Shown here in pieces: positions 8,034 to 64,000 of a stretch of 64,000 nt of DNA. A program made the translations under genes and the position numbers. Within the stretch, counting starts at the first letter, position 1. The number at the start of each line of letters is the position of its first letter. Under the pieces are notes generated by a model. The model searched no databases, was not told the origin of the DNA, and saw nothing but the letters and a program-made list of their open reading frames with translations. The stretch comes from Phyllobates terribilis (Eukaryota): NCBI RefSeq assembly GCF_046119375.1, contig NW_027362774.1:21142001-21206000 (forward strand), read 5' to 3'.

Positions 8034-21167
<13,134 letters not shown>

Positions 21168-21728: not shown

Positions 21729-21840
21729 ATGTCTGTTTCCCAGAACACGCCGGTCCGGGCCGGGGCCTCCGCGGTTCCGTATGGACACGTCATCGGGAGC
21801 GAAAAATGGAGAGGAACCGAACTGGCCCAGTTATTACAGG
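21729..21840 (+). CDS. FAAP24: FAAP24 first coding exon (MSVSQNTPVRAGASAVPYGHVIGSEKWRGTELAQLLQ)
   Basis: CAG acceptor at 21724-21726, ATG at 21729, GTATGA donor at 21841. Confidence 0.9.
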
Positions 21841-24800
21841 GTATGAATGGAAGTAGTGCTGAGGGGGCGTCCGGGTGCTGAGCGCAATCCACAGGCCAGC
21901 AGCCCCCTATGATGCACCCGCCTAGGGTCTACCAGGGCACGGTGGTGTCCTCCAGGGTCGGGTAGGGTCTACCAGGGCACAGTGGGGTCCGCCAGGGCCA
22001 CCTAGGGTCTACCAGGGCACGGTGGTGTCCTCCAGGGCTGGGTAGGGTCTACCAGGGCACAGTGGTGTCCTCCAGGGTCGGGTAGGGTCTACCAGGGCAC
22101 AGTGGGGTCCGCCAGGGCCACCTAGGGTCTACCAGGGCACGGTGGTGTCCTCCAGGGCTGGGTAGGGTCTACCAGGGCACAGTGGTGTCCTCTAGGGTCT
22201 ACCAGGGCACAGTGGGGTCCGCCAGGGCCAGGTAGGGTCTACCAGGGCACAGTGGTGTCCTCCAGGGCCGCCTAGGGTCTACCAGGGCACGGTGGTGTCC
22301 TCCAGGGCCGGGTAGGGTCTACCAGGGCACGGTGGTGTCCTCCAGGGCCGGGTAGCGTCTACCAGGGCACGGTGGTGTCCTCCAGGGCCGGGTAAGGTCT
22401 ACCAGGGCACGGTGGTGTCCTCCAGGGCCGGGTAGGGTCTACCAGGGCACGGTGGTGTCCTCCAGGGCCGGGTAGGGTCTACCAGGGCACGGTGGTGTCC
22501 TCCAGGGCTGGGTAGGGTCTACCAGGGCACGGTGGTGTCCTCCAGGGCCGGGTAGGGTCTACCAGGGCACGGTGGTGTCCTTCAGGGCCGGGTAGGGTCT
22601 GCCAGGGCACGGTGGTGTCCTCCAGGGCCGGGTAGGGTCTGCCAGGGCACGGTGGTGTCCTCCAGGGCCGGGTAGGGTCTGCCAGGGCACGGTGGTGTCT
22701 TCTAGGGCCGGGTAGGGTCTGCCACGGCATGGTGGTGTCCTCCAGGGCCGGGTAGGGTCTGCCACGGCATGGTGGTGTCCTCCAGGGGCGGGTAGGGTCT
22801 GCCAGGGCACGGTGGGGTCCGCCAGGGCCAGGTAGGCTCTGCCAGGGCACGGTGGGGTCCGCCAGGGCCAGGTAGGCTCTGCCAGGGCACGGTGGGGTCC
22901 GCCAGGGCCTGGTAGGGTCCACTTACGATCTGCCTGGGCACGGTGGGGTCTGCCAGGGCCAGGTAGGCTCTGCCAGGGCACGGTGGGGTCCGCCAGGGCC
23001 AGGTAGGCTCTGCCAGGGCACGGTGGGGTCCGCCAGTGCCAGGTAGGCTCTGCCAGGGCACGGTGGGGTCCGCCAGGGCCAGGTAGGCTCTGCCAGGGCA
23101 CGGTGGGGTCCGCCAGGGCCGGGTAGGGTCCACTTATGATCTGCCTGGGCACGGTGGGGTCTGCCAGGGCACGGTGGGGTCCGCCAGGGCCGGGTAGGGT
23201 CCGTCTAGGCTCTGCCAGGGCATGGTGGGGTCCGCCAGGGCCTGGTAGGCTCTGCCAGGGCACGGTGGGGTCCGCCAGGGCTGGGTAGGCTCTGCCAGGG
23301 CACATTGTGGTTTGCCAAGGCACGGTGTGGTCTGCCAGGGCACTGTGGAGTCCTCGGTCGGCCAGGGCCGGGTAGGGTCTGCCAGGGCATGGTGGGGTCC
23401 ACCAACGCCGGGTAGGGTTAGCCACAATGGTGCCATTTGCAATCAGTTTTTTTTCCCATACCTGTGCCAGGATCCATCCTCCTCATCCTCACATCAGTGC
23501 TGCAGGCCGTCCGTCCCCCTATCCTCAACCAACAGTCACTGAAAATGTGAATCTTCCGCCTTTAGGGAAGGTGAAGTTGCTGTTTGAAGACGGCCTGGGA
23601 CTGGTAGACTTCCATCTGTCGCACCGTGCCTGCGTCCTGTACATCTCGGAGTCTGACCTGGTGTCCGGGAACGCTTTCAAGAGAAGACTTGTGCGATTTC
23701 GAAAGGTAAATCATTGCGGCTATGTGCTCACAGAGCAGATTCCACACTGATTCTGCCGTGCTGTCCACGTGTATCGATGTGGGTAAATCTGTGTGTGGAT
23801 CCGCAGCAGAAATCAGGCCTGGATCTATGTCCTGGAATCTCTTGCAGATCTGTCACACACTATGGCCTCGACACATGTTGCACTGGCAACACTCGCTACG
23901 TTGCAGCACAATACAAGTGGGTTGCACGACAAGGTGCTCCGACTGCAACTTGCTTATCATGGTTGCAGCAGCCTCTGGGTCACAATGTGAACTCCATTCG
24001 TTTGTATTGTGCTGCGATGTAGCAGCGACACGTAGGAGCAAGCTTTGCCGGTGCAACTAGGGTTCTGGCCAAAGTCGCCTTTGCATTTTTATCACAAAAC
24101 CTGATGGATTTCCTAGTCCCTGCAAAATCCATGATATTCCCGAAGTCTCACACGTTGCTTATTTTTTTTACTTGTTAATTATGTCAGATTTTACCCATTC
24201 TACTGAGTGAAGAAAAATCTGCAGCAAAAAATGCATGCAAAAAACTCTGCGTTTTTCCTGCCAAGAGATGCAGAAATTTCTGCAGCAAATACTTGATGTG
24301 CGCATATACCCTTACACTCCTGTCTAATTAAAAAAAGAAAATATATTTATAAATATATATCTCTATATCTCTATAGATAGATAGATAGATATAGTACAGA
24401 CCAAAAGTTTGGACACACCTTCTCATTTAAAGATTTTTCTGTATTTTCATAGACTATGAAAATTGTACATTCACACTGAAGGCATCAAAACTATGAATTA
24501 ACACATGTGGAATTATATACTTAACAAAAAAGTGTGAAACAGCTGAAAATATGTCTTATATTCTAGGTTCTTCAAAGTAGCCACCTTTTTCTTTGATGAC
24601 TGCTCTGCACACTCTTGGCATTCTCTTGATGAGCTTCAAGAGGTAGTCACCGGAAATGGTCTTCACTTCACAGGTGTGCCCTGTCAGGTTTAATAAGTGG
24701 GATTTCTTGCCTTATAAATGGGGTTGGGACCATCAGTTGTGTTGTGCAGAAGTCAGGTGGATACACAGCTGATAGTCCTACTGAATAGACTGTTAGAATT

Positions 24801-27518
24801 TGTATTATGAAAAGAAAAAGCAGCTAAGTAAAGAAAAACGAGTGGCCATCATTACTTTAAGAAATGAAGGTCAGTCAGTCTGAAAAATTGGGAAAACTTT
24901 GAAAGTGTCCCCAAGTGCAGTTGCAAAAACCATCAAGCGCTACAAAGAAACTGGCTCACATGAGGACCGCCCCAGGAAAGGAAGACCAAGAGTCACCTCT
25001 GCTTCTGAGGATAAGTTTATCCGAGTCACCAGCCTCAGAAATCGCTGGTTAACAGCAGCTCAGATTAGAGACCAGGTCAATGCCACACAGAGTTCTAGCA
25101 GCAGACACATCTCTACAACAACTGTTAAGAGGAGACTTTGTGCAGCAGGCCTTCATGGTAAAATAGCTGCTAGGAAACCACTGCTAAGGACAGGCAACAA
25201 GCAGGAGAGACTTGTTTGGGCTAAAGAACACAAGGAATGGACATTAGACCAGTGGAAATCTGTGCTTTGGTCTGATGAGTCCAAATTTGAGATCTTTGGT
25301 TCCAACCACCGTGTCTTTGTGTGACGCAGAAAAGGTGAACGGATGGACTCTACATGCCTGGTTCCCACCGTGAAGCATGGAGGAGGAGGTGTGATGGTGT
25401 GGGGTTGCTTTGCTGGTGACACTGTTGGGGATTTATTCAAAATTGAAGGCATCCTGAACCAGCATGGCTACCACAGCATCTTGCAGCGGCATGCTATTCC
25501 ATCCGGTTTGCGTTTAGTTGGACCATCATTTATTTTCCAACAGGACAATGACCCCAAACACACCTCCAGGCTGTGTAAGGGCTATTTGACCAAGAAGGAG
25601 AATGATGGGGGGCTACGCCAGATGACCTGGCCTCCAGTCACCAGACCTGAACCCAATCGAGATGGTTTGGGGTGAGCTGGACCGCAGAGTGAAGGCAAAA
25701 GGGCCAACAAGTGCTAAGCATCTCTGGGAACTCCTTCGAGATTGTTGGAAGACCATTTCCGGTGACTACCTCTTGAAGCTCATCAAGAGAATGCCAAGAG
25801 TGTGCAAAGCAGTCATCAAAGCAAAAGGTGGCTACTTTGAAGATCCTAGAATATAAGACATATTTTCAGTTGTTTCACACTTTTTTGTTAAGTATATAAT
25901 TCCACATGTGTTAATTCATAGTTTTGATGCCTTCAGTGTGAATGTACAATATTCATAGTCATGAAAATACAGAAAATTCTTTAAATGAGGTGTGTCCAAA
26001 CTTTTGGTCTGTACTGTATATAATATATATTTATTTATTTAATGATAAAAAAATATTTATAATATATATTTCAAAATATATTTTTTATTTCAATAAATAT
26101 ATTTTATTAATAATAATCAATATATATGCATTTTATTTTTTTTAAAGGCCAGCAACTTAAAGGGCGTTATTATAGCAGAGAGGACGCGGCTTAGTGATCA
26201 GTACTTTCCTCCGGTGCAGAACTTTGTGGCACTGGAACTCGGCATGGCGTTACTCCCCGTTACTAGTCAGAGCGAAGCGGCTCAGCTAATATGTCATTTA
26301 GTAAGTAAATAGGTATTATAATAGCATTATAATTATTATTATATTTTTTATTTTATATTTTTTTTTTTATTAATAAATTATATTTTTATTTTATTTTTTC
26401 ATTATTATCATACCACTCATTGCAGGAGGGTAAAGTGCATCTCACTTTTCAGAATAAGCTGTCATATGTGTGTACATGACAAATAACACTATTTCTGGTC
26501 ATTATATGGCTTGTATCCTGGATTTTTCACCAGTTTTCCCCTCTGCAGCCTCTATCTCTAAATTTCAGTTGTCTCTGAGCTAGTGGGTGCAGACTAGCTG
26601 CCATGATGTCTCCCATGCACAGACATGAGGGATTCCTGCTCTTATTTCTCTATAGTAACAAGCAGCAGCAGCATGGAGGATATAATACAGCAGTGTTGCT
26701 GTGAATCCAGACCTGGGTTGACAAACACTAGAAAGCAGCAGCCCCATCTGTGTGTCTATTCCACTCCTGCTTCTCCCTTTATTCTATCTATCTATCTATC
26801 TATCTATCTTAGTTGTAATCTGATCCCTCAGTGACCTTGAACAGGAGATATTTTTAGCAATATTATAAGTAAATGATAAGTTCAAACTAGAGAAGAAGTG
26901 GAGAAAGAAGCATATTTCTCTGGTAAGAAATACTACAACTTTTCTTTTATTTGCATGTAATATTAATTTATGCAAAGTTTGTCCAATTAATTACTAACCT
27001 TCTGCCACCACTAGAGGGAGCTTGCAGTATACGGATTTTTAAAGCAATGGCAGCTGTAGAAATCTGCATGCGGTGAGCTCCCCCTAATGGTAGGAAAGTG
27101 GTAAAAAGAGCAACGAATTAAGAGTCACATTCGGACGACTTGATCTCATTTTATTATTAGGCTTAGGGCCTTTCTTTTATAGTTGAAGTGCATTAAATAC
27201 CAAATCACATAAAAATGTCATGAAATGTAGCTAAAACCAAAATTAAATATCCTCCCCTATCCCCCCCCACAGGTGCAAGAGCGAAGCAGAGAAGGGGGCA
27301 GCAACCCTTTTATTGGCAAGAAGCGCGGCCATCTTTGTGAAGCCGGCGTCCTGCAGACCGTACAGAGGATCCCGGGGGTCGGCCGGGTGAAGGCTCTTCA
27401 GCTCCTTCAGTATTTTCCCAGCATTCAGCAACTTTCCAACGCGTCTCTGAAGGAGCTGGAGGCCGTGGTGGGACGAGGAATCGCCAGCAACATCCATTCT
27501 TTCTTTACACAAACTTGA
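21729..27518 (+). CDS. FAAP24: FAAP24 (Fanconi anemia core complex-associated protein 24), complete, 216 aa
   Basis: Exons 21729-21840, 23566-23705, 26148-26300 and 27273-27518 give 651 nt in frame. ERCC4-like region (GHVIGSEKWRG, FEDGLG.VDF) and HhH motif (QRIPGVGRVKA...FPSIQQLSNAS) match recalled human FAAP24. Confidence 0.95.
21920..23420. repeat. 40-bp G-rich VNTR (~37 units) in FAAP24 intron 2
   Basis: Unit TAGGGTCTACCAGGGCACGGTGGTGTCCTCCAGGGCCGGG, drifting along the array. Confidence 0.95.
23566..23705 (+). CDS. FAAP24: FAAP24 exon 3 (GKVKLLFEDGLGLVDFHLSHRACVLYISESDLVSGNAFKRRLVRFRK)
   Basis: TTTAG/GTAAAT boundaries, conserved peptide. Confidence 0.93.
24394..26016 (+). mobile_element. 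DD38E Tc1-like element in FAAP24 intron 3 (left boundary of the triplication)
   Basis: TIRs present; ORF pieces 24899-25324, 25343-25675 and 25662-25856, with stops and a frameshift. Confidence 0.95.
26148..26300 (+). CDS. FAAP24: FAAP24 exon 4, copy 1 (ASNLKGVIIAERTRLSDQYFPPVQNFVALELGMALLPV...)
   Basis: AAAG/GTAAGT boundaries, 153 nt, phase 0-0. Confidence 0.92.
27273..27518 (+). CDS. FAAP24: FAAP24 terminal exon, copy 1 (HhH domain)
   Basis: CACAG acceptor, 81 codons plus TGA. Confidence 0.93.
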   Translation: MQERSREGGSNPFIGKKRGHLCEAGVLQTVQRIPGVGRVKALQLLQYFPSIQQLSNASLKELEAVVGRGIASNIHSFFTQT

Positions 27519-27717
27519 TAACACTAATGTATCTGCAGGAAAAACTCAGGGTGCATAAGAAGAAGAGGGCAGCAAGCTGTGCCATTCACACACTAGTCCC
27601 CTTAGGGGACTGATTTCCCCTGCGGAGATCCAGCTAGTGCAGGAAGCAATGGTGCATCGCTTATATTTTTTTTTAACCCAATCCAAGCACTTGACCCTTT
27701 GCTTTAAAAAAAAAAAA

Positions 27718-27968
27718 AAAAAAAACTGCATTACTCACCCTCCCCTGGTCCAGCTCTCTGTCTCTGCCGCTGCCCCCGGTGTCTGTTTTTATATTCTGCA
27801 TCCAATCAGTGGCTCGTACTGTCAGCTTGGGCAGAGCCGCTGAGATTTATTGATTGGCTGCAGAGCTGTCGACGTGACTTCAGCACTGCAAAAGCAATGA
27901 CAGACACCGGGGGTCAGCAGCGGAGACTCGGCGCTGGACCTGGGAATAGTGAGTAATGCAGTTTTTTT
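27718..27968. mobile_element. Hairpin MITE downstream of the FAAP24 stop (repeated in copies 2 and 3)
   Basis: AAAAACTGCATTACTCAC / GTGAGTAATGCAGTTTTT ends and nested complementary arms. Confidence 0.7.
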
Positions 27969-28276
27969 AGTAGGGGAGTTTCAAAACCAGAAATCCCCTT
28001 TAAGTAATCCATTGATTTATATAATGTGGTGTAACCCCCCCCCCCCTACTGAAGTGTATGCTGCTGCCCCCTGGTAGTAATGTGCTATAACCTTATGGAT
28101 AAAGACAGCGGTGAGGTGAGAGATGCTGCGGGCATGATGTTGTGGGGTAGATTATATAGGAAGCATAATAAATAGCAAGCCGCCAACAGACGTCACCTCT
28201 CAAGATTGGAAGGGGGGGATGCCGGATGACCCCTCTAAATTAGTAACAAAAAAAACCACCAAACTTTGCACTATGT

Positions 28277-28294
28277 AATAAATGTCATTTTATT
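28277..28294. terminator. Face-to-face polyadenylation signals (AATAAA on plus, AATAAA on minus); also at 32660-32677 and 37045-37062
   Basis: Sequence AATAAA-TGTCAT-TTTATT between the convergent stop codons. Confidence 0.45.
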
Positions 28295-29441
28295 CCTCAT
28301 GGACAGATTATTTCCTGCCGCCCGTCAGACATTATTTCCGCAATCGCCATTATATTTCTGATAAAACTCAATATTGCACAATGTACGGTAATCTCAACCA
28401 GTAAAAGTGGATATTTGCTGCCGGCACCAGGGTCCTTTTATTAAATGGCAATCTCTTGCTTTTCTGTGGCGGCGATCAGGAAACCTGCGTCCTCTTAAAT
28501 ACACTTAAATATATACAATCTTATATAAACCCTAAAAATGAAGAAACAAATCTATATTTAACAGATATTTACAAATCTTTCCCTTATAATAGGGGAATCG
28601 TGGTGTCGGAGATCAGCAGAAAACAACATTTTTAACCTTTGTTCCTTTTTAAATCGCATCTACGAAGAGAAAGGATAAAAAAAATGCAATAATCACACGG
28701 AGAAATGACAGCGATCTGCACCCGGCTCTTGATACTACAACTCCCAGCATGGAGGAACCGGAGACGTGCGGACCACCGACCTACAGTAACCATCGTGTGC
28801 AGATAATAATACCGTATAAACAACACATATAGAAAGAAAACATCCATGCGATACAATACGTCCAGCTTTGTACCAGATAGGGGTTGTAGTCACTGACTGC
28901 AGTGAACACCGTCTATAGCAGCATCTGGAGGAAAGTTGGGGTAGTCTATCCCGTCTACGTCTTTGGTCCATGTGTCAAAATAATAGCAATATTATACGGA
29001 AAAAAAATATATAGAATTTCCTACTTACGCGATTTTTTTTTTTATTATTTCGATTTTTTTTTTTTTGATTTTTTTTTTAATATAAAAAAAAATTAAGTTG
29101 TGAAGAAGGATGCACTACCTGACTATGACCTGCAGGTGGCAGCATTTAACCTACTAAAAGTTTTCTTGCTCTCCTGTAATATTTCCCCAGCGTTTTCTGC
29201 AGTAATCGGCAAGTTAAAAATGGCTACTAATTTCATTGCAATCTAAAAACAGATAGCGAAAAAATTAAGAAAAACGGTATTTTTTTTTTAACTATTTAAG
29301 AACAGATCCAACTTTACCAATATGGAGGAGAAGGTAAAAAAAAAAAAATCCTGTTCAATGAGAAAATGTATAAATTAATTGTCACAGCTCTCGGGATTGT
29401 CACAGTTGTCTCTAGGAGTCTCTTTTTGGGACAGGAGGGGG

Positions 29442-29696
29442 TCAGTACATGGCACTGTCACATGCCCGGTTGTCGTAGGGTGAGAGGAAAAGTTTGCTGC
29501 TTTGGGGCTTGGCGGTGGCGGGGGAAGCGAGGCACAAGGTGCTTGCTGCTTTCTGGCGGTTTCTGAATCCCCAGCTGAGGAAGGATAATTTTTTTGTTGC
29601 TTTTTGAATTTTGGGGTTCTTGTCATCGTCCATTGTTAGACAGATCAGGGAGTAGGTCTTCTGCATCCCGGCTGAGTATGTGGCGCTCTTGTTGTG
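29442..29696 (-). other. RHPN2: Duplicated RHPN2 terminal exon, copy 1
   Basis: Same translation and acceptor. Confidence 0.9.
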
Positions 29697-29894
29697 CTGT
29701 ATAAGCAAAGAGAAGAATGGGATATTATCTCCAATTATAGAAGTCATAGACAGCTGTCCGAGATCGGAACGCGGTGCACGGATCTGACGGCGGCGCTCCC
29801 GACCTGCGTTCCAATGGTTAACAATACAACACAATTAAAAAGAAGAAGAAATTAGGTTGTACAATTTAAAAAAAAGTGTATATATATATATACA

Positions 29895-30401
29895 CAGTAC
29901 AGACCACCTTCTCATTTAAAGATTTTTCTGTATTTTCATGACTATGAAAATTGTACATTCACACTGAAGGCATCAAAACTATGAATTACCACATGTGGAA
30001 TTATATACTTAACAAAAAAGTGTGAAACAACTGAAAATATGTCTTATATTCTAGGTTCTTCAAAGTAGCCACCTTTTGCTTTGATGACTGCTTTGCACAC
30101 TCTTGGCATTCTCTTGATGAGCTTCAAGAGGTAGTCACCGGAAATGGTCTTCACTTCACAGGTGTGACCTGTCAGGTTTAATAAGTGTGCAAAGCAGTCA
30201 TCAATGCAAAAGGTGGCTACTTTGAAGAACCTAGAATATAAGACATATTTTCAGCTGTTTCACTTTTTTTTGTTAAGTATATAATTCCACATGTGGTAAT
30301 TCATAGTTTTGATGCCTTCAGTGTGAATGTACAATTTTCATACTGGAGAAAATACGGAAAATTCTTTAAATGAGGTGTGTCCAAACTTTTGGTCTGTACT
30401 G
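29895..30401 (+). mobile_element. Internally deleted (507 bp) hybrid DD38E element, triplication junction 1
   Basis: Left TIR plus ~30 bp fused at AGTG (30184-30187) to the distal right TIR. Confidence 0.92.
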
Positions 30402-30536
30402 TATATATATATATTTATTTATTTATTTAATGATAAAAAAATATTTATAATATATATTTCAAAATATATTTTTTATTTCAATAAATATATTTTATTAATA
30501 ATAATCAATATATATGCATTTTATTTTTTTTTAAAG

Positions 30537-30689
30537 GCCAGCAACTTAAAGGGCGTTATTATAGCAGAGAGGACGCGGCTTAGTGATCAGTACTTTCCTC
30601 CGGTGCAGAACTTTGTGGCGCTGGAACTCGGCATGGCGTTACTCCCCGTTACTAGTCAGAGCGAAGCGGCTCAGCTAATATGTCATTTA
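30537..30689 (+). other. FAAP24: Duplicated FAAP24 exon 4, copy 2
   Basis: Matches copy 1 except synonymous GCA>GCG at 30620; splice sites intact. Confidence 0.9.
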
Positions 30690-31656
30690 GTAAGTAAATA
30701 GGTCATAAAGCATTATAATTATTATTATATTTTTTATTTTATAATTTTTTTTTTTTATTAATAAATTATATTTTTACTTTATTTTTTCATTATTATCATA
30801 CCACTCATTGCAGGAGGGTAAAGTGCATCTCACTTTTCAGAATAAGCTGTCATATGTGTGTACATGACAAATAACACTATTTCTGGTCATTATATGGCTT
30901 GTATCCTGGATTTTTCACCAGTTTTCCCCTCTGCAGCCTCTATCTCTAAATTTCAGTTGTCTCTGAGCTAGTGGGTGCAGACTAGCTGCCATGATGTCTC
31001 CCATGCACAGACATGAGGGATTCCTGCTCTTATTTCTCTATAGTAACAAGCAGCAGCAGCATGGAGGATATAATACAGCAGTGTTGCTGTGAATCCAGAC
31101 CTGGGTTGACAAACACTAGAAAGCAGCAGCCCCATCTGTGTGTCTATTCCACTCCTGCTTCTCCCTTTATTCTATCTATCTATCTATCTATCTTAGTTGT
31201 AATCTGATCCCTCAGTGACCTTGAACAGGAGATATTTTTAGCAATATTATAAGTAAATGATAAGTTCAAACTAGAGAAGAAGTGGAGAAAGAAGCATATT
31301 TCTCTGGTAAGAAATACTACAACTTTTCTTTTATTTGCATGTAATATTAATTTATGCAAAGTTTGTCCAATTAATTACTAACCTTCTGCCACCACTAGAG
31401 GGAGCTTGCAGTATACGGATTTTTAAAGCAATGGCAGCTGTAGAAATCTGCATGCGGTGAGCTCCCCCTAATGGTAGGAAAGTGGTAAAAAGAGCAACGA
31501 ATTAAGAGTCACATTCGGACGACTTGATCTCATTTTATTATTAGGCTTAGGGCCTTTCTTTTATAGTTGAAGTGCATTAAATACCAAATCACATAAAAAT
31601 GTCATGAAATGTAGCTAAAACCAAAATTAAATATCCTCCCCTATCCCCCCCCACAG

Positions 31657-31902
31657 GTGCAAGAGCGAAGCAGAGAAGGGGGCAGCAACCCTTTTATTGG
31701 CAAGAAGCGCGGCCATCTTTGTGAAGCCGGCGTCCTGCAGACCGTACAGAGGATCCCGGGGGTCGGCCGGGTGAAGGCTCTTCAGCTCCTTCAGTATTTT
31801 CCCAGCATTCAGCAACTTTCCAACGCGTCTCTGAAGGAGCTGGAGGCCGTGGTGGGACGAGGAATCGCCAGCAACATCCATTCTTTCTTTACACAAACTT
31901 GA
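31657..31902 (+). other. FAAP24: Duplicated FAAP24 terminal exon, copy 2
   Basis: Same 81-aa translation, acceptor intact. Confidence 0.9.
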
Positions 31903-33824
31903 TAACACTAATGTATCTGCAGGAAAAACTCAGGGTGCATAAGAAGAAGAGGGCAGCAAGCTGTGCCATTCACACACTAGTCCCCTTAGGGGACTGATTT
32001 CCCCTGCGGAGATCCAGCTAGTGCAGGAAGCAATGGTGCATCGCTTATATTTTTTTTTAACCCAATCCAAGCACTTGACCCTTTGCTTTAAAAAAAAAAA
32101 AAAAAAAAACTGCATTACTCACCCTCCCCTGGTCCAGCTCTCTGTCTCTGCCGCTGCCCCCGGTGTCTGTTTTTATATTCTGCATCCAATCAGTGGCTCG
32201 TACTGTCAGCTTGGGCAGAGCCGCTGAGATTTATTGATTGGCTGCAGAGCTGTCGACGTGACTTCAGCACTGCAAAAGCAATGACAGACACCGGGGGTCA
32301 GCAGCGGAGACTCGGCGCTGGACCTGGGAATAGTGAGTAATGCAGTTTTTTTAGTAGGGGAGTTTCAAAACCAGAAATCCCCTTTAAGTAATCCATTGAT
32401 TTATATAATGTGGTGTAACCCCCCCCCCCTACTGAAGTGTATGCTGCTGCCCCCTGGTAGTAATGTGCTATAACCTTATGGATAAAGACAGCGGTGAGGT
32501 GAGAGATGCTGCGGGCATGATGTTGTGGGGTAGATTATATAGGAAGCATAATAAATAGCAAGCCGCCAACAGACGTCACCTCTCAAGATTGGAAGGGGGG
32601 GATGCCGGATGACCCCTCTAAATTAGTAACAAAAAAAACCACCAAACTTTGCACTATGTAATAAATGTCATTTTATTCCTCATGGACAGATTATTTCCTG
32701 CCGCCCGTCAGACATTATTTCCGCAATCGCCATTATATTTCTGATAAAACTCAATATTGCACAATGTACGGTAATCTCAACCAGTAAAAGTGGATATTTG
32801 CTGCCGGCACCAGGGTCCTTTTATTAAATGGCAATCTCTTGCTTTTCTGTGGCGGCGATCAGGAAACCTGCGTCCTCTTAAATACACTTAAATATATACA
32901 ATCTTATATAAACCCTAAAAATGAAGAAACAAATCTATATTTAACAGATATTTACAAATCTTTCCCTTATAATAGGGGAATCGTGGTGTCGGAGATCAGC
33001 AGAAAACAACATTTTTAACCTTTGTTCCTTTTTAAATCGCATCTACGAAGAGAAAGGATAAAAAAAATGCAATAATCACACGGAGAAATGACAGCGATCT
33101 GCACCCGGCTCTTGATACTACAACTCCCAGCATGGAGGAACCGGAGACGTGCGGACCACCGACCTACAGTAACCATCGTGTGCAGATAATAATACCGTAT
33201 AAACAACACATATAGAAAGAAAACATCCATGCGATACAATACGTCCAGCTTTGTACCAGATAGGGGTTGTAGTCACTGACTGCAGTGAACACCGTCTATA
33301 GCAGCATCTGGAGGAAAGTTGGGGTAGTCTATCCCGTCTACGTCTTTGGTCCATGTGTCAAAATAATAGCAATATTATACGGAAAAAAAATATATAGAAT
33401 TTCCTACTTACGCGATTTTTTTTTTTATTATTTCGATTTTTTTTTTTTTGATTTTTTTTTTAATATAAAAAAAAATTAAGTTGTGAAGAAGGATGCACTA
33501 CCTGACTATGACCTGCAGGTGGCAGCATTTAACCTACTAAAAGTTTTCTTGCTCTCCTGTAATATTTCCCCAGCGTTTTCTGCAGTAATCGGCAAGTTAA
33601 AAATGGCTACTAATTTCATTGCAATCTAAAAACAGATAGCGAAAAAATTAAGAAAAACGGTATTTTTTTTTTAACTATTTAAGAACAGATCCAACTTTAC
33701 CAATATGGAGGAGAAGGTAAAAAAAAAAAAATCCTGTTCAATGAGAAAATGTATAAATTAATTGTCACAGCTCTCGGGATTGTCACAGTTGTCTCTAGGA
33801 GTCTCTTTTTGGGACAGGAGGGGG

Positions 33825-34079
33825 TCAGTACATGGCACTGTCACATGCCCGGTTGTCGTAGGGTGAGAGGAAAAGTTTGCTGCTTTGGGGCTTGGCGGTG
33901 GCGGGGGAAGCGAGGCACAAGGTGCTTGCTGCTTTCTGGCGGTTTCTGAATCCCCAGCTGAGGAAGGATAATTTTTTTGTTGCTTTTTGAATTTTGGGGT
34001 TCTTGTCATCGTCCATTGTTAGACAGATCAGGGAGTAGGTCTTCTGCATCCCGGCTGAGTATGTGGCGCTCTTGTTGTG
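33825..34079 (-). other. RHPN2: Duplicated RHPN2 terminal exon, copy 2
   Basis: Same translation and acceptor as the copy at 38210-38464. Confidence 0.88.
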
Positions 34080-34277
34080 CTGTATAAGCAAAGAGAAGAA
34101 TGGGATATTATCTCCAATTATAGAAGTCATAGACAGCTGTCCGAGATCGGAACGCGGTGCACGGATCTGACGGCGGCGCTCCCGACCTGCGTTCCAATGG
34201 TTAACAATACAACACAATTAAAAAGAAGAAGAAATTAGGTTGTACAATTTAAAAAAAAGTGTATATATATATATACA

Positions 34278-34784
34278 CAGTACAGACCACCTTCTCATTT
34301 AAAGATTTTTCTGTATTTTCATGACTATGAAAATTGTACATTCACACTGAAGGCATCAAAACTATGAATTACCACATGTGGAATTATATACTTAACAAAA
34401 AAGTGTGAAACAACTGAAAATATGTCTTATATTCTAGGTTCTTCAAAGTAGCCACCTTTTGCTTTGATGACTGCTTTGCACACTCTTGGCATTCTCTTGA
34501 TGAGCTTCAAGAGGTAGTCACCGGAAATGGTCTTCACTTCACAGGTGTGACCTGTCAGGTTTAATAAGTGTGCAAAGCAGTCATCAATGCAAAAGGTGGC
34601 TACTTTGAAGAACCTAGAATATAAGACATATTTTCAGCTGTTTCACTTTTTTTTGTTAAGTATATAATTCCACATGTGGTAATTCATAGTTTTGATGCCT
34701 TCAGTGTGAATGTACAATTTTCATACTGGAGAAAATACGGAAAATTCTTTAAATGAGGTGTGTCCAAACTTTTGGTCTGTACTG
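34278..34784 (+). mobile_element. Internally deleted hybrid DD38E element, triplication junction 2
   Basis: Same as 29895-30401; junction AGTG at 34567-34570. Confidence 0.92.
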
Positions 34785-34919
34785 TATATATATATATTTA
34801 TTTATTTATTTAATGATAAAAAAATATTTATAATATATATTTCAAAATATATTTTTTATTTCAATAAATATATTTTATTAATAATAATCAATATATATGC
34901 ATTTTATTTTTTTTTAAAG

Positions 34920-35072
34920 GCCAGCAACTTAAAGGGCGTTATTATAGCAGAGAGGACGCGGCTTAGTGATCAGTACTTTCCTCCGGTGCAGAACTTTGTG
35001 GCGCTGGAACTCGGCATGGCGTTACTCCCCGTTACTAGTCAGAGCGAAGCGGCTCAGCTAATATGTCATTTA
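34920..35072 (+). other. FAAP24: Duplicated FAAP24 exon 4, copy 3
   Basis: Same as copy 2 (GCG at 35003). Confidence 0.88.
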
Positions 35073-36039
35073 GTAAGTAAATAGGTCATAAAGCATTATA
35101 ATTATTATTATATTTTTTATTTTATAATTTTTTTTTTTTATTAATAAATTATATTTTTACTTTATTTTTTCATTATTATCATACCACTCATTGCAGGAGG
35201 GTAAAGTGCATCTCACTTTTCAGAATAAGCTGTCATATGTGTGTACATGACAAATAACACTATTTCTGGTCATTATATGGCTTGTATCCTGGATTTTTCA
35301 CCAGTTTTCCCCTCTGCAGCCTCTATCTCTAAATTTCAGTTGTCTCTGAGCTAGTGGGTGCAGACTAGCTGCCATGATGTCTCCCATGCACAGACATGAG
35401 GGATTCCTGCTCTTATTTCTCTATAGTAACAAGCAGCAGCAGCATGGAGGATATAATACAGCAGTGTTGCTGTGAATCCAGACCTGGGTTGACAAACACT
35501 AGAAAGCAGCAGCCCCATCTGTGTGTCTATTCCACTCCTGCTTCTCCCTTTATTCTATCTATCTATCTATCTATCTTAGTTGTAATCTGATCCCTCAGTG
35601 ACCTTGAACAGGAGATATTTTTAGCAATATTATAAGTAAATGATAAGTTCAAACTAGAGAAGAAGTGGAGAAAGAAGCATATTTCTCTGGTAAGAAATAC
35701 TACAACTTTTCTTTTATTTGCATGTAATATTAATTTATGCAAAGTTTGTCCAATTAATTACTAACCTTCTGCCACCACTAGAGGGAGCTTGCAGTATACG
35801 GATTTTTAAAGCAATGGCAGCTGTAGAAATCTGCATGCGGTGAGCTCCCCCTAATGGTAGGAAAGTGGTAAAAAGAGCAACGAATTAAGAGTCACATTCG
35901 GACGACTTGATCTCATTTTATTATTAGGCTTAGGGCCTTTCTTTTATAGTTGAAGTGCATTAAATACCAAATCACATAAAAATGTCATGAAATGTAGCTA
36001 AAACCAAAATTAAATATCCTCCCCTATCCCCCCCCACAG

Positions 36040-36285
36040 GTGCAAGAGCGAAGCAGAGAAGGGGGCAGCAACCCTTTTATTGGCAAGAAGCGCGGCCATC
36101 TTTGTGAAGCCGGCGTCCTGCAGACCGTACAGAGGATCCCGGGGGTCGGCCGGGTGAAGGCTCTTCAGCTCCTTCAGTATTTTCCCAGCATTCAGCAACT
36201 TTCCAACGCGTCTCTGAAGGAGCTGGAGGCCGTGGTGGGACGAGGAATCGCCAGCAACATCCATTCTTTCTTTACACAAACTTGA
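36040..36285 (+). other. FAAP24: Duplicated FAAP24 terminal exon, copy 3
   Basis: Same 81-aa translation. Confidence 0.88.
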
Positions 36286-38209
36286 TAACACTAATGTATC
36301 TGCAGGAAAAACTCAGGGTGCATAAGAAGAAGAGGGCAGCAAGCTGTGCCATTCACACACTAGTCCCCTTAGGGGACTGATTTCCCCTGCGGAGATCCAG
36401 CTAGTGCAGGAAGCAATGGTGCATCGCTTATATTTTTTTTTAACCCAATCCAAGCACTTGACCCTTTGCTTTAAAAAAAAAAAAAAAAAAAACTGCATTA
36501 CTCACCCTCCCCTGGTCCAGCTCTCTGTCTCTGCCGCTGCCCCCGGTGTCTGTTTTTATATTCTGCATCCAATCAGTGGCTCGTACTGTCAGCTTGGGCA
36601 GAGCCGCTGAGATTTATTGATTGGCTGCAGAGCTGTCGACGTGACTTCAGCACTGCAAAAGCAATGACAGACACCGGGGGTCAGCAGCGGAGACTCGGCG
36701 CTGGACCTGGGAATAGTGAGTAATGCAGTTTTTTTAGTAGGGGAGTTTCAAAACCAGAAATCCCCTTTAAGTAATCCATTGATTTATATAATGTGGTGTA
36801 ACCCCCCCCCCCCCTACTGAAGTGTATGCTGCTGCCCCCTGGTAGTAATGTGCTATAACCTTATGGATAAAGACAGCGGTGAGGTGAGAGATGCTGCGGG
36901 CATGATGTTGTGGGGTAGATTATATAGGAAGCATAATAAATAGCAAGCCGCCAACAGACGTCACCTCTCAAGATTGGAAGGGGGGGATGCCGGATGACCC
37001 CTCTAAATTAGTAACAAAAAAAACCACCAAACTTTGCACTATGTAATAAATGTCATTTTATTCCTCATGGACAGATTATTTCCTGCCGCCCGTCAGACAT
37101 TATTTCCGCAATCGCCATTATATTTCTGATAAAACTCAATATTGCACAATGTACGGTAATCTCAACCAGTAAAAGTGGATATTTGCTGCCGGCACCAGGG
37201 TCCTTTTATTAAATGGCAATCTCTTGCTTTTCTGTGGCGGCGATCAGGAAACCTGCGTCCTCTTAAATACACTTAAATATATACAATCTTATATAAACCC
37301 TAAAAATGAAGAAACAAATCTATATTTAACAGATATTTACAAATCTTTCCCTTATAATAGGGGAATCGTGGTGTCGGAGATCAGCAGAAAACAACATTTT
37401 TAACCTTTGTTCCTTTTTAAATCGCATCTACGAAGAGAAAGGATAAAAAAAATGCAATAATCACACGGAGAAATGACAGCGATCTGCACCCGGCTCTTGA
37501 TACTACAACTCCCAGCATGGAGGAACCGGAGACGTGCGGACCACCGACCTACAGTAACCATCGTGTGCAGATAATAATACCGTATAAACAACACATATAG
37601 AAAGAAAACATCCATGCGATACAATACGTCCAGCTTTGTACCAGATAGGGGTTGTAGTCACTGACTGCAGTGAACACCGTCTATAGCAGCATCTGGAGGA
37701 AAGTTGGGGTAGTCTATCCCGTCTACGTCTTTGGTCCATGTGTCAAAATAATAGCAATATTATACGGAAAAAAAATATATAGAATTTCCTACTTACGCGA
37801 TTTTTTTTTTTATTATTTCGATTTTTTTTTTTTTGATTTTTTTTTTAATATAAAAAAAAATTAAGTTGTGAAGAAGGATGCACTACCTGACTATGACCTG
37901 CAGGTGGCAGCATTTAACCTACTAAAAGTTTTCTTGCTCTCCTGTAATATTTCCCCAGCGTTTTCTGCAGTAATCGGCAAGTTAAAAATGGCTACTAATT
38001 TCATTGCAATCTAAAAACAGATAGCGAAAAAATTAAGAAAAACGGTATTTTTTTTTTAACTATTTAAGAACAGATCCAACTTTACCAATATGGAGGAGAA
38101 GGTAAAAAAAAAAAAATCCTGTTCAATGAGAAAATGTATAAATTAATTGTCACAGCTCTCGGGATTGTCACAGTTGTCTCTAGGAGTCTCTTTTTGGGAC
38201 AGGAGGGGG

Positions 38210-38464
38210 TCAGTACATGGCACTGTCACATGCCCGGTTGTCGTAGGGTGAGAGGAAAAGTTTGCTGCTTTGGGGCTTGGCGGTGGCGGGGGAAGCGAGG
38301 CACAAGGTGCTTGCTGCTTTCTGGCGGTTTCTGAATCCCCAGCTGAGGAAGGATAATTTTTTTGTTGCTTTTTGAATTTTGGGGTTCTTGTCATCGTCCA
38401 TTGTTAGACAGATCAGGGAGTAGGTCTTCTGCATCCCGGCTGAGTATGTGGCGCTCTTGTTGTG
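38210..38464 (-). CDS. RHPN2: RHPN2 terminal coding exon (proximal copy, copy 3)
   Basis: ACAG acceptor, HNKSATY...DSAMY-stop. Confidence 0.92.
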   Translation of the reverse strand, partial: HNKSATYSAGMQKTYSLICLTMDDDKNPKIQKATKKLSFLSWGFRNRQKAASTLCLASPATAKPQSSKLFLSPYDNRACDSAMY

Positions 38465-41400
38465 CTGTATAAGCAAAGAGAAGAATGGGATATTATCTCC
38501 AATTATAGAAGTCATAGACAGCTGTCCGAGATCGGAACGCGGTGCACGGATCTGACGGCGGCGCTCCCGACCTGCGTTCCAATGGTTAACAATACAACAC
38601 AATTAAAAAGAAGAAGAAATTAGGTTGTACAATTTAAAAAAAAGTGTATATATATATATACACAGTACAGACCACCTTCTCATTTAAAGATTTTTCTGTA
38701 TTTTCATGACTATGAAAATTGTACATTCACACTGAAGGCATCAAAACTATGAATTACCACATGTGGAATTATATACTTAACAAAAAAGTATGAAACAACT
38801 GAAAATATGTCTTATATTCTAGGTTCTTCAAAGTAGCCACCTTTTGCTTTGATGACTGCTTTGCACACTCTTGGCATTCTCTTCATGAGCTTCAAGAGGT
38901 AGTCACCAGAAATGGTTTTCACTTCACAGGTGTGCCCTGTCAGGTTTAATAAGTGGGATTTCTTCCTCTATAAATGGGGTTGGGACCATCAGTTGTTGTG
39001 TTGTGCAGAAGTCTGGTGGATACACAGCTGATAGTCCTACTGAATAGACTGTTAGAATTTGTATTATGGCAAGAAAAAAGCAAAGTAAAGAAAAACGAGT
39101 GGCCATCATTAAGAAATGAAGGTCAGTCAGTCTGAAAAATTGGGAAAACTTTGAAAGTGTCTCCAAGTGCAGTTGCAAAAACCATCAAGTGCTACAAAGA
39201 AACTGGCTCACATGAGGACCGCCCCAGGAAAGGAAGACCAAGAGTCACCTCTGCTTCTGAGGATAAGTTTATCCGAGTCACCAGCCTCAGAAATCGCAGG
39301 TTAACAGCAGCTCAGATTAGAGACCAGGTCAATGCCACACAGAGTTCTAGCAGCAGACACATCTCTTCAACAACTGTTAAGAGGAGACTTTGTGCAGCAG
39401 GCCTTCATGGTAAAATAGCTGCTAGGAAACCACTGCTAAGGACAGGCAACAAGCAGAAGAGACTTGTTTGGGCTAAAGAACACAAGGAATGGACATTAGA
39501 CCAGTGGAAATCTGTGCTTTGGTCTGATGAGTCCAAATTTGAGATCTTTGGTTCCAACCACCGTGTCTTTGTGCGACGCAGAAAAGGTGAACGGATGGAC
39601 TCTACATGCCTGGTTCCCACCGTGAAGCATGGAGGAGGAGGTGTGATGGTGTGGGGGGCTTTGCTGGTGACACTGTTGGGGATTTATTCAAAATTGAAGG
39701 CGTACTGAACCAGCATGGCTACCACAGCATCTTGCAGCGGCATGCTATTTCATCCGGTTTGCGTTTAGTTGGACCATCATTCATTTTTCAACAGGACAAT
39801 GACCCCAAACACACCTCCAGGCTGTGTAAGGGCTATTTGACCAAGAAGAAGAGTGATGGGGTGCTACGCCAGATGACCTGGCCTCCACAGTCACCAGACC
39901 TGAACCCAATCGAGATGGTTTGGGGTGAGCTGGACCACAGAGTGAAGGCAAAAGGGCCAACAAGTGCTAAGCATCTCTGGGAACTCCTTCAAGATTGTTG
40001 GAAGACCATTTCCGGTGACTACCTCTTGAAGCTCATCAAGAGAATGCCAAGAGTGTGCAAAGCAGTCATCAAAGCAAAAGGTGGCTACTTTGAAGAACCT
40101 AGAATATAAGACATATTTTCAGTTGTTTCACACTTTTTTGTTAAGTATATAATTCTACATGTGTTAATTCATAGTTTTGATGCCTTCAGTGTGAATGTAC
40201 AATTTTCATAGTCATGAAAATACAGAAAAATCTTTAAATGAGAAGGTGTGTCCAAACTTTTGGTCTGTACTGTATATATATATATATATATATATATTAT
40301 ATTTATTCCACGGCGATAATTTAAAAACTAATTATTATTATTATAGCGCCATTTATTCCATGGCGCTTTTTCTTCCAAAAAACAGCGCCATTCCTGTCCA
40401 TCGGTTGCAGCTTTAATGGAGCAGACCCATCTCATAGATACACGTGGTCCTGTCGGTGTGCATGGATTCTACTGCTAATATCAGGGATCAGCCATAATAT
40501 TTCCGCGTGCACTCACCATACTGGACGTCTGGTCCTGGATACTGATCACCTTGATCTCTTTCCCTTCTTCCCTTATTCCGTTCAGCATGCCCATGACTTC
40601 ATTTATCGAGCACCATTTGCAATCTTTGCCTTCCACCGCCACGATGTAATCTCCTTCCTTTACGCCTTCTCGCTGGAACGTGAAAAAGGCAAAATATTAC
40701 TAAATCTACTAAGCAAAAAAAAAAAAAAATAGGATTTGGTAGTTATTGGCTAAATCCGCCAATTTCCACTGACCCCACTCGATGGACGAAAACGTGCGGC
40801 ATTGACCCTTTCTCATTGCTGATTTAGTTCCCTGCAAATTCTAATTATTCTGTCTTCTGTAATGTAAAGTTGCTCTCAATGCACCGACTTACTAATGATC
40901 TTATATACTTTTACAGCAGCAGTGTAAAACATGGGGGAGAAGTTATGTAGAGGCAATCAGTTTCCTAGGAAAGGAGTGCACGCTCGCAAGCTCTTTGTTA
41001 TAAGCCCCTGTGTTCCTCCCAAGCTGTACAACACACAGTTAGACTTTGGATCGACCATGTTCCTGGTCCGAACTGTCAATCTTCAGGAGTGTACCGCCCC
41101 TGGCAAGCAGAGAAGCGGTGCGCTCCTGAAGGAAGAACAGTAGACATCCCCTTTTAATGCATTCTGCCGTCACAATCTTCCCTTTGTACTTACTGCGGCC
41201 GGACAGAGCGGATCCAGCGAGGTTATCTGTACGGGACAGTCTCCCTTTAAGATGAACCCTATCTCTCCATCTTCTAGAGTCAGGAGGACCTTTCTTGGCG
41301 CCGACCACCTCTGTTTTGCTGAGAATACTGACAGCGGACCCTAAAAAAAAAAAAAAAAAAAAAAAAAAAGGTGCAAAGTGAGAAAACCTCGGACTTTCTC

Positions 41401-44400
41401 CACTTAGTTTGCACAGTCGGAGTATTGTTTTTGCAGCAGGAATGTGGATGTCACGGTCTGGTATTATGTGAACATAGGAAGAAGTTATCTGAAGATCAGG
41501 GGATAGGGGCGCTGGGGGCACTTTCTGCTTCTGTAGTTTATGCACTGTGACGAGAGGTTGGTAAGGACAATGCCAGTCTGCTGCTCGTAAGCCCTTTACA
41601 TTTGAGGAATAATTGAGATTATTGTTCACATCATATAAAAGTATCTATGGATCTACAGAGACAACACAGGCATTTTACAGCTTAAATCTCTGTGTGGCGT
41701 GGCGGTACGTACCAGTCGTTGAAAGAAATCAATCACTTTCACCCTGGAGAGCGGAGGAGGAATCATCTCTGCTTTGTACTCTGTTTTACCTGGGGAGGAT
41801 CAGAAGACTTAATTGTGTATACATTCCAGCAAAACATGAAAAATACGCCCCGCTTATCTGTGTAATCTGCCCGTCCAGAGACAGGTCGCACATTCTCCGG
41901 CACAGCTGCACTTTACAGTCTGAGGGATACTGAGATACCATCTTTTTTTTTTTTATTTATTTAGCTTTTAGTTACTTATTATTATAAATTTTATTATNNN
42001 NNNNNNNNNNNNNNNNNNNNNNNNNNNNNNNNNNNNNNNNNNNNNNNNNNNNNNNNNNNNNNNNNNNNNNNNNNNNNNNNNNNNNNNNNNNNNNNNNNNN
42101 NNNNNNNNNNNNNNNNNNNNNNNNNNNNNNNNNNNNNNNNNNNNNNNNNNNNNNNNNNNNNNNNNNNNNNNNNNNNNNNNNNNNNNNNNNNNNNNTTCTT
42201 TCCGCCCTTTTTTAATTTCCATATTTAAAAAGCCATTTTGGGGGTACATATAATGAACTAACCGTTTAGATTCCGCGATCAGCACTGACTGTGGCATCTA
42301 AAGGGGTTATATGGCTAGATTTGGAGTTAGCAATGGGGCCAATTGCTGGAAAGGTACTAAGGACCTTTTGAGGTCCATGAACCTTTTAGAAACCATCTTT
42401 CCCCTCTAGCACCAATGAAATGCAGTAGGAGTCCAACCTGCTCTTCCCAATTATAAATTCTAGGACTAGTAATTTAGCAGTAACATTCTCATTTTCCTCA
42501 CACTTACAGACTATTTCGGGGGCCACCAAAATGCCGAGGAACTCTTCTTCTTTTTTGTAATAGGAGTCTTTCAGCAGCGCCCTCTTGTGGAAAGCGGACA
42601 GTATCTCCTGCAGGATATCGATCTGCTTGAGTTGGCTGCACAGATTCGATAACCTCAGGGCTTCTTCGTGACACATGATTGCTTTGGATAAATGCGCCTT
42701 TCCTACGGATGCACGAGACAAAGAAAAAAAAAGAAAACAACGCTCAAGAAACACAATAATTTGTATGAGAAGAGGCTGAGACGCGACACGGCTGTATACA
42801 CAATGCACAATGGAAGCTGGGTGAGGACTGGCAGACGGTCACGACGTTTATTGACCATTTTACAGGGATGTTTTTCTATTGTCCCCGAGTACAGAGGAAT
42901 GTGAACTATGTCCTGTGTAGCCGGGTGCGGCCAGGAGCGAGGGTGGTGCCAACAAGTGTTATGGAACTTTACTGTAACTTTACAACGTGGTGCATGGCCT
43001 GGACGATATCTCCATATCACATACAAATACTTGTCCGACAGGACACCGTGTCACCGACGTGTGATCTCCTCAACAAGAGCCTGAGTGCCACATGAAAGGC
43101 TTATATTGAGTTTATCCCAACTTCACATTTTGCTGAGAAGCTAAGAATAAAAAACCCATCTGTCTATCATTATCTTTCACATTATTATACTTCAGAGCTG
43201 CACTCACTATTCTGCTAGTGCAGTCACTGTGTACATACAATACATTACTGATCCTGAGTTACATCCTGTATTCTACCCCAGAGCTGCACTCACTATTCTG
43301 CTGGTGGAGTCACTATGTACATACATTACATTACTGATCCTGAGTTACATCCTGTATTATACTCCAGAGCTGCACTCACTATTCTGCTGGTGCAGTCACT
43401 GTGTACATACAATACATTACTGATCCTGAGTTACATCCTGTATTCTACCCCAGAGCTGCACTCACTATTCTGCTGGTGGAGTCACTATGTACATACATTA
43501 CATTACTGATCCTGAGTTACATCCTGTATTATACTCCAGAGCTGCACTCACTATTCTGCTGGTGCAGTCACTGTGTACATACAATACATTACTGATCCTG
43601 AGTTACATCCTGTATTCTACCCCAGAGCTGCACTCACTATTCTGCTGGTGGAGTCACTATGTACATACATTACATTACTGATCCTGAGTTACATTCTGTA
43701 TTATACTCCACAGCTGCACTCACTATTCTGCTGGTGCAGTCACTGTGTACATACATTACATTACTGATCCTGAGTTATATCCTGTATTATACTCCAGAGC
43801 TGCACTCACTATTCTGCTGGTGGAGTCACTATGTACATACATTACATTACTGATCCTGAGTTACATCCTGTATTATACTCCAGAGCTGCACTCACTATTC
43901 TGCTTGTGCAGTCACTGTGTACATACATTACATTACTGATCCTGAGTTACATCCTGTATTCTACCCCAGAGCTGCACTCACTATTCTGCTGGTGCAGTCA
44001 CTGTGTACATACATTACATTACTGATCCTGAGTTACATCCTGTATTATACTCCAGAGCTGCACTCACTATTCTGCTGGTGGAGTCACTATGTACATACAT
44101 TACATTACTGATCCTGAGTTACATCCTGTATTATACTCCAGAGCTGCACTCACTATTCTGCTTGTGCAGTCACTGTGTACATACATTACATTACTTATCC
44201 TGAGTTACATCCTGTATTATACTCCAGAGCTGCACTCACTATTCTGCTGGTGCAGTCACTGTGTACATACATTACATTACTGACCCTGAGTTACATCCTG
44301 TATTATACTCCAGAGCTGCACTCACTATTCTGCTGGTGCAGTCACTGTGTACATACATTACATTACTGATCCTGAGTTACATCTGTATTATACTCCAGAG

Positions 44401-63189: not shown

Positions 63190-64000
63190 GCTATAATACA
63201 GTATGGAGGGGTGCATTATACTATATGGAGGACCATGGGGGTGCATTATACTGTATGGAGGACCATGGGGGTGCATTATGCTGTATGGAGAACCTTGGGG
63301 GTGCATTATATTGTATAGAGGACCACGAAGGTGCATTATACTGTATGGAGGACCTTGGAGGAACATTATACTGTATAAAGGACCATGGAGGTGCATTATG
63401 CTGTATGGAGGACCTTGGGGGTGCATTATACTGTATGAAGGACTATGGAGGTGCATTATGCTGTATGGAGAACCTTGGGGGTGCATTATATTGTATAGAG
63501 GACCACGAAGGTGCATTATACTGTATGGAGGACCTTGGAGGAACATTATACTGTATAAAGGACCATGGAGGTGCATTATGCTGTATGGAGGACCTTGGGG
63601 GTGCATTATACTGTATGAAGGACTATGGAGGTGCATTATGCTGTATGGAGGACCTTGGAGTTGCATTATGGAGGACCATGGAGGTACATTATACTGTATG
63701 GAGGACCATGGGGGTGCATTATACTGTATGGAGGACCATGGGGTGCATTATACTGTATGGAGGGCATTGGGGTGTATTATACTGTTTTGAGGACCATGGG
63801 GGTGCATTATACTGTATGAAGGACCATGGGGAGTGCATTATACTGTATGGAGGACTATGGAGAGAGCATTATACTGTATGGAGGACCATGGGGAAAGCAT
63901 TTTATTATATGGAGGACCATGGGTAGTGCATTTTATTACATGGAGGACCATGGGGAGTGCATTATATTCTATGGAGGACCATGGGGAGAGCATTATATTC
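63190..64000. repeat. 30-bp satellite with a 180-bp higher-order duplication, running off the window
   Basis: GTGCATTATACTGTATGGAGGACCATGGGG units. Confidence 0.93.

Follow-up and report, generated by a model that had tools for sequence, protein, structure and literature searches.

The stretch of DNA considered here (the window) comprises 64,000 nucleotides of the frog Phyllobates terribilis, taken from the forward strand of contig NW_027362774.1 (positions 21,142,001 to 21,206,000) of the RefSeq assembly GCF_046119375.1. It holds two convergent genes, FAAP24 on the plus strand and RHPN2 on the minus strand, whose shared 3′ region is laid out three times. Self-BLAST of the part of the window between 20 and 45 kb shows that positions 25799-38955 consist of one unit of approximately 4.4 kb, present in three head-to-tail copies (Table 1). 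Every copy contains FAAP24 exons 4 and 5 on the plus strand and the RHPN2 terminal exon on the minus strand, with splice sites and stop codons intact; the acceptors (..ag) and the exon-4 donor (gtaagt) are preserved in all three. FAAP24 meets copy 1 first, and RHPN2, whose penultimate exon ends at 40518, meets copy 3 first. In that, the exon-by-exon comparison of the copies and the geometry of the two genes agree with the preliminary description of this DNA, which had reported a 4.38-kb unit repeated three times, complete exon sets in each unit, and both genes kept whole by reading into copies 1 and 3, respectively; its further point, that an unequal crossover would leave both genes whole, follows from the same geometry.

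Table 1. Features of the FAAP24-RHPN2 locus, in window coordinates
Feature	Position	Strand	Length or content	Basis
Unit copy 1	25799-30183		4385 bp	self-BLAST and three-way alignment
Unit copy 2	30184-34566		4383 bp	self-BLAST and three-way alignment
Unit copy 3	34567-38955		4385 bp plus 4-bp overlap	self-BLAST and three-way alignment
FAAP24 first coding exon	21729-21840	+	ATG at 21729	N-terminal motif resembles FAAP24
FAAP24 exon 3	23566-23705	+	last exon before the repeated block	donor AAAG/gtaaat; RNA-like contig end maps to 23672-23701
FAAP24 exon 4, copy 1	26148-26300	+	part of the FANCM/FAAP24 pseudonuclease domain (PND)	Pfam PND, E 3.5e-15
FAAP24 exon 4, further copies	30537-30689, 34920-35072	+		copy comparison
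FAAP24 exon 5 and stop, copy 1	27273-27518	+	(HhH)2 domain	Pfam HHH_2; PDB FAAP24 4m6w, E 1e-25
FAAP24 exon 5 and stop, further copies	31657-31902, 36040-36285	+		identical to copy 1
RHPN2 terminal exon and stop, copy 1	29442-29696	-	coding 29696-29445, stop 29442-29444	good acceptor
RHPN2 terminal exon and stop, further copies	33825-34079, 38210-38464	-	38210-38464 nearest to the rest of the gene	all identical
RHPN2 penultimate coding exon	40517-40672	-	end of the PDZ domain; 3′ end 40517/40518	tblastn, 100% identity to P. terribilis rhophilin-2
E1, degenerate Tc1-like transposon	24392-26016	+	in FAAP24 intron 3	terminal inverted repeats of about 290 bp; broken transposase reading frames
E2, degenerate Tc1-like transposon	38663-40272	+	in the last RHPN2 intron; same orientation as E1	Pfam HTH_Tnp_Tc3_2 and DDE_3
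J1, junction element	29895-30401	+	AGTG overlap at 30184-30187	arm alignments
J2, junction element	34278-34784		AGTG at 34567-34570	identical to J1

The alignment of 25799-34570 with 30184-38955 gives 99.59% identity over 8780 columns and that of 25799-30187 with 34567-38955 gives 99.23%, and the three-way alignment of the units has 38 variant columns among 4396. Most of these (31/38) fall at 25820-26786, where copy 1 differs from copies 2 and 3, the latter two being identical there; five are single-nucleotide variants (SNVs) at 38790-38935 that separate copy 3, and two reflect the length of a poly-C run (12, 11, and 13 C in copies 1, 2, and 3), which may differ through either fast slippage or consensus noise. 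This run, at approximately 28034, 32418, and 36802, reads 13 C in the contigs of the sequencing runs coded X1 and X23, which are described below. Except for it, the unit core of about 3.2 kb (26787-30021) is the same in all three copies. The divergence between the copies is confined to the outer edges of the array and declines with distance from them: on the left, 12 SNVs in 218 bp are followed by 13 variant columns in 394 bp, then by one microsatellite unit, and then by none over 3.2 kb, and on the right there are five SNVs in the last 166 bp. A scan of the whole window found no run of N within the repeated block; the runs of N lie only at 17839-18047, 41998-42195, and 54790-54945. Their flanks show no overlap duplication, and, since they may be deliberate masks, they were rejected as a clue to assembly technology.

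The FAAP24 model, spliced from its first coding exon and exon 3 into the copy-1 exons, gives a coding sequence of 651 nt, that is, 216 codons and a single terminal stop, where about 215 residues are expected, and the PND is followed by a C-terminal (HhH)2 domain. The only coding difference between the copies is a synonymous GCA>GCG change in FAAP24 exon 4 of copies 2 and 3 (30620/35003). The peptide of the RHPN2 terminal exon matches the C-termini of HR1-BRO1-PDZ proteins named rhophilin-2; it is identical at 84 of 84 positions to residues 600-683 of P. terribilis rhophilin-2 and differs from the proteins of other dendrobatids. The frog rhophilin-2 proteins were recovered with a profile seeded by the exons of the window, a search with shark rhophilin-2 having listed no frogs. 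By tblastn, the remaining RHPN2 exons map to the minus strand in consecutive order, starting at 60.6 kb and ending at 40.5 kb. No open reading frame (ORF) of the window spans a unit junction, and of the two ORFs that run over a TCTA microsatellite (69 residues in copy 1 and 64 in copies 2 and 3), looked up across samples, neither was recorded.

The boundaries of the array lie within the two Tc1-like transposons E1 and E2, the left breakpoint (25799) in the right arm of E1, whose terminal motif is CAGTACAGACC, and the right breakpoint (38955) in the left arm of E2. Both elements are 1.6 kb long with arms of about 290 bp, and they are 96.5% identical over 1641 columns; the inverted arms 24339-24664 and 26071-25748 share 92% identity. 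The broken transposase ORFs retain the domains HTH_Tnp_Tc3_2 (E 4e-13) and DDE_3 (E 1e-6) of the Tc1/mariner superfamily. At each of the two internal boundaries of the array stands the same short junction element, in which an E2-type left arm is fused to an E1-type right arm at a 4-bp AGTG and approximately 1.1 kb of transposon interior is missing. Both parents are marked, the left arm bearing the private 14-bp deletion of E2 and the right arm the private 3-bp deletion and T>A change of E1. The AGTG is common to the left arm, which reads AATAAGTG and continues with GGATTTC, and to the right arm, which reads AAGAGTG and continues with TGCAAAG, and a 40-mer across the join, at 30168-30207 in the first junction, occurs at only two sites in the window, the two junctions. 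The head-to-tail units, separated by one reproducible junction sequence, have the form of a tandem duplication, and the join itself that of a microhomology junction (2-15 bp shared, without long in-register homology). The full-length, in-register hybrid element expected from nonallelic homologous recombination (NAHR) was not seen in the window, as the junction measures 507 bp versus 1.6 kb for E1 and E2 and joins the arms out of register.

In the model favoured here, the amplified segment would extend from within the right arm of E1 to within the left arm of the similarly oriented E2. A first duplication would have joined the left arm of E2 to the right arm of E1 at the AGTG microhomology. In this step, either replication would have switched template, or ends would have been joined, from the E2 left arm back to the E1 right arm; alternatively, E2 and E1 would have recombined unequally and the resulting hybrid element would then have lost part of its interior. 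The third, identical copy would have arisen later, when these two units underwent an unequal crossover; we infer this order of events. With splicing and termination both taking place in whichever copy a gene meets first, FAAP24 and RHPN2 would each keep a normal mRNA.

The two routes for the first step correspond to two known classes of rearrangement. Those attributed to fork stalling and template switching or microhomology-mediated break-induced replication (FoSTeS/MMBIR) resemble the present case in the head-to-tail gain, the 4-bp microhomology join, and the position of the breakpoints within repeat elements that form inverted repeats, and perhaps also in the cluster of point changes beside the junction; they differ in that no templated insertion or inverted segment is found here, where the mechanism is moreover read from the sequence only. 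Non-recurrent gains of this kind, both tandem duplications and triplications joined at microhomology, are exemplified by the human PLP1 and MECP2 loci. In NAHR between Alu, LINE, or transposon copies, as here, two similarly oriented and closely alike family members (96.5%) bracket the unit, and the junction combines the left arm of the right-hand element with the right arm of the left-hand one, as predicted. NAHR would nevertheless be expected to leave a full-length hybrid, whereas here the interior is missing and the 4-bp overlap lies outside the homologous register, so this route needs an extra deletion step.

The right arm of the junction (30184-30401 and 34567-34784) is the most divergent of the ten arms of this family in the window, standing 5-7% from all others, and it holds a compact cluster of six changes (CATGAC > CTCCAG), yet it shares the two private markers of the E1 right arm. 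Its distance from the E1 arm is 5.5% over 218 bp, which is much for a young event and weighs against a recent origin; to our knowledge, this density of changes is also far above that of reported FoSTeS/MMBIR cases. Of the 12 changes between the two arms, about ten are private to the junction arm and about two to that of E1. Such lopsided change fits error-prone break-induced replication, a process described as error-prone in both its general and its microhomology-mediated form (PMC4352052), though the density is very high. Alternatively, the confinement of divergence to the edges may reflect an older array with a homogenised interior or conversion from other Tc1 copies, and the 31 variant columns within 1 kb to the right of the junction could also result from an older origin or from ectopic conversion.

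The first of these alternatives would have the array be millions of years old, with unequal crossing-over and gene conversion homogenising its interior while the outer edges, lacking a partner, diverged. It would account for the restriction of divergence to the two outer edges, fading inward, and for a junction right arm as distant from that of E1 as unrelated family members are. Neutral divergence should, however, be even between the two arms, which it is not; SNVs private to two public runs (X5 and X14) and present at full depth fit one copy; and three dendrobatid relatives have no array. We regard great age as decidedly improbable. The gene calls of these relatives, Dendrobates tinctorius, Ranitomeya variabilis, and R. 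imitator, include a single FAAP24 each (216-227 residues), and their gene order is CEP89 <> FAAP24 >< RHPN2, with a tail-to-tail spacing of 1.9-2.4 kb between the last two. FAAP24 and RHPN2 form a conserved tail-to-tail pair of vertebrates, and the order and orientation are the same in the window, as they are at human 19q13.11; the shared 3′ region is repeated only in this assembly. Among the four dendrobatids compared, the array is specific to the Phyllobates assembly, and, as the three relatives have one FAAP24, the extra copies would be young and Phyllobates-specific.

Whether the animal itself carries the array is a separate matter, as an assembly may lay out a single unit flanked by E1 and E2 as a tandem repeat, e.g. 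from a chimeric or amplified molecule, such as a 4.4-kb circle sequenced as a concatemer, or from two mis-threaded haplotypes. In favour of such an artefact, the genome is reported to be 12.6 Gb in size with 88% repeats and hard to assemble, a description written about another assembly of the species (PMC12208295). The false duplications described by Ko et al. 2022 (PMC9516828) likewise consist of near-identical neighbours in repeat-rich heterozygous genomes and yield extra partial gene models. They differ from the present array in that false duplications on the same scaffold typically flank gaps (PMC9516828), whereas no gap separates the copies here, and in the defined novel junction. This junction is an argument for a real array, since a 4-bp join of two distinguishable arms that come from different elements must exist in the reads and no overlap step of an assembler would make it. 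In addition, the 31 variant columns shared by copies 2 and 3 over about 1 kb imply that the junction-linked sequence is a distinct molecule and not copy 1 used again; they are mostly substitutions, point away from the family consensus, and are unlike raw long-read error or the effects of consensus polishing. The window also resolves minisatellite arrays of 2.6-2.7 kb at 94-97% identity, which implies that long reads able to span units of 4.4 kb were used.

Further evidence comes from 28 public runs, all available as Logan contigs built with k=31, which break in the Tc1 arms and carry one, noisy mean depth per contig; contigs were mapped over 25300-31299, a region that contains no single-copy flank as a depth baseline. 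Variants of the copy-2/3 type occur in other samples, namely the shorter TCTA allele in X5 (a contig at 31066-31262 with 0 differences) and the C at 30777 in X1, and sequence of the copy-1 type is present in the same two runs. In X1, position 30777 is read as T at a contig depth of 25.3 versus C at 5.6, and in X5 the depths are approximately 6.3 for copy-1-type, 10.6 for copy-2/3-type, and 13.8 for shared sequence, all of these being noisy per-contig means. The two types could be two alleles, as the artefact would have it; the copy-2/3 set would then follow the interior of E1, however, and not the left arm of E2, as it does. We also considered and rejected the view that a haplotype switch alone explains how the edges differ: over the central 3 kb, the assembly and other individuals are only about 0.1% apart, which makes alleles that stand 3-5% apart solely at the edges unlikely.

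It has to be noted that several observations weigh against a real array of three. Copies 2 and 3 show no difference other than the homopolymer, as in an over-counted repeat and as an artefact would predict. The G of copies 2 and 3 in exon 4 (30620/35003) was found in none of four runs, and X1, which over 2.9 kb departs from the assembly at no other position, has an A at 30620 at full contig depth. X5 and X14 each differ from the assembly at two sites of the shared part at full contig depth, as fixed differences of a single copy would, and this is simplest if those animals are single-copy; the array is therefore probably not fixed. The summed word depth of the Tc1 family is about 1e6, so that the junction contigs cannot be told apart, and the runs, being contigs, offer no usable depth baseline; the loose contig ends at 30187 show the canonical continuation of the family, GGATTTCTT. 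The source assembly itself offers no independent support, as its gene calls under GCA_046119375.1, two partial FAAP24 models (100 and 134 residues) placed 1925 bp and then a further 4383 bp past the end of RHPN2, reproduce the distances in the window exactly and thus come from the same assembly. The exact rhophilin-2 protein is encoded in only one genome found, again GCA_046119375.1; the draft genome in the literature, PTer_1.0 (GCA_045270155.1), is not the same assembly, and no literature naming the accession GCA_046119375.1 was found. Calibration of depth by the published library coverages (PMC12208295) was tried and dropped, as two assignments of runs to libraries give about 3x or about 1x, and the Nextera adaptor ends in the coded runs fit both mate-pair and Hi-C libraries. 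The public read data give no confirmation of copy number.

Taking both sides together, we consider a real tandem gain in Phyllobates terribilis probable and an assembly artefact unlikely, though it carries appreciable weight. Most likely, the array represents a recent copy-number gain of an ordinary kind, with both genes left intact, and the balance leans slightly towards a real, lineage-specific tandem amplification of a 4.385-kb segment that is present in the animal in three copies. The duplication could also be real and its copy number misstated, e.g. if there were two units, one of the copy-1 and one of the copy-2/3 type, or some other number, with the third unit an over-count by the assembler. 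All the evidence for a real junction applies to this reading equally, copies 2 and 3 being told apart only by the run of 11 versus 13 C and by the array edge, and the depths in X5 fall between 1:1:2 and 1:2:3. Those depths are noisy, however, long-read assemblers collapse near-identical tandem units more often than they expand them, and an array of 13 kb should lie within the reach of current long reads; a misstated number is a minor possibility.

Transcript evidence comes from the contigs of one RNA-like run (X23), mapped over the same region, 25300-31299. One contig joins 26144/8-26300 to 27273-29031, its upstream loose end mapping to FAAP24 exon 3, and a second covers 29095-29697 and then continues in the sequence at 40518. 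The splices seen are thus 23705>26148, 26300>27273, and 40518 to the RHPN2 terminal exon, so that FAAP24 exon 3 is joined to an exon 4 having the copy-1 letter and the penultimate RHPN2 exon to a copy of the terminal exon, as the reading of both genes into their nearest copies requires. The depth of X23 is zero on the copy-2/3-specific stretches within 30500-31299 and on 29700-29899, which provides no indication of any use of the spare modules and lends no support to the suggestion of the preliminary description that read-through would give alternative last exons. In all likelihood, the four additional sets of exons are carried along silently, presumably with neutral effect. The idea that the triplication creates a sense/antisense overlap fares no better, as the 1.9 kb between the FAAP24 and RHPN2 stops within a single unit is almost wholly covered by X23 contigs, poly(A) signals of the two genes are interspersed in this stretch, and the single-copy relatives have a similar spacing (1.9-2.4 kb); antisense overlap of the 3′ untranslated regions thus already belongs to the single unit. 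A more far-reaching proposal, namely that this is a copy-number-variable locus of Phyllobates in which crossovers always restore both genes, the mutation cluster is the footprint of error-prone replication, and read-through, by occasional use of the spare terminal exons, couples a Fanconi-pathway gene and a Rho effector in antisense, appears very improbable to us.

The claim that no description of such an arrangement exists was overstated, as tandem segmental duplication with a microhomology junction in transposon arms is a well-known class; the array adds a new case to the known tandem duplications of gene parts that are associated with transposons, with no functional effect indicated for FAAP24 or RHPN2, and it opens no new biological question. 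If real, it would be a clean and well-marked case in which an abundant DNA transposon, present in two nearby copies, seeded the tandem amplification of gene fragments in a giant, repeat-rich frog genome, and would show that a gain of this kind may do no harm although it cuts two genes, since both are cut in introns and each keeps a complete first copy. In practical terms, the repeat inflates gene counts, the two truncated FAAP24-like products of the source assembly deriving from the spare exon pairs, and the locus may be useful as a test of assembly accuracy in P. terribilis.

Beyond E1 and E2, three more copies of the Tc1-like family are found at 12210, 16234-17838, and 55303-56932 (terminal motif CAGTACAGACCAAAAGTTTGGACAC), which brings the number of independent elements in the 64 kb to five; the copy that starts at 16234 extends into the run of N at 17839. 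The contigs of all DNA runs pile on this family to a summed depth of about 1e6, and forms with an internal deletion from arm to arm are common among them. The window further contains well-resolved minisatellites, of which one (31 bp x 84, 18352-20950) lies upstream of the first coding exon of FAAP24, one (40 bp x 37, 21923-23418) between its coding exons 1 and 2, and one (86 bp x 31, 43183-45850) in an RHPN2 intron, with others at 9832-10620 (33 bp x 24) and at the window end (30 bp x 26, 63208-63997). These minisatellites enlarge FAAP24 from 2-4 kb in the relatives to at least 5.8 kb here.

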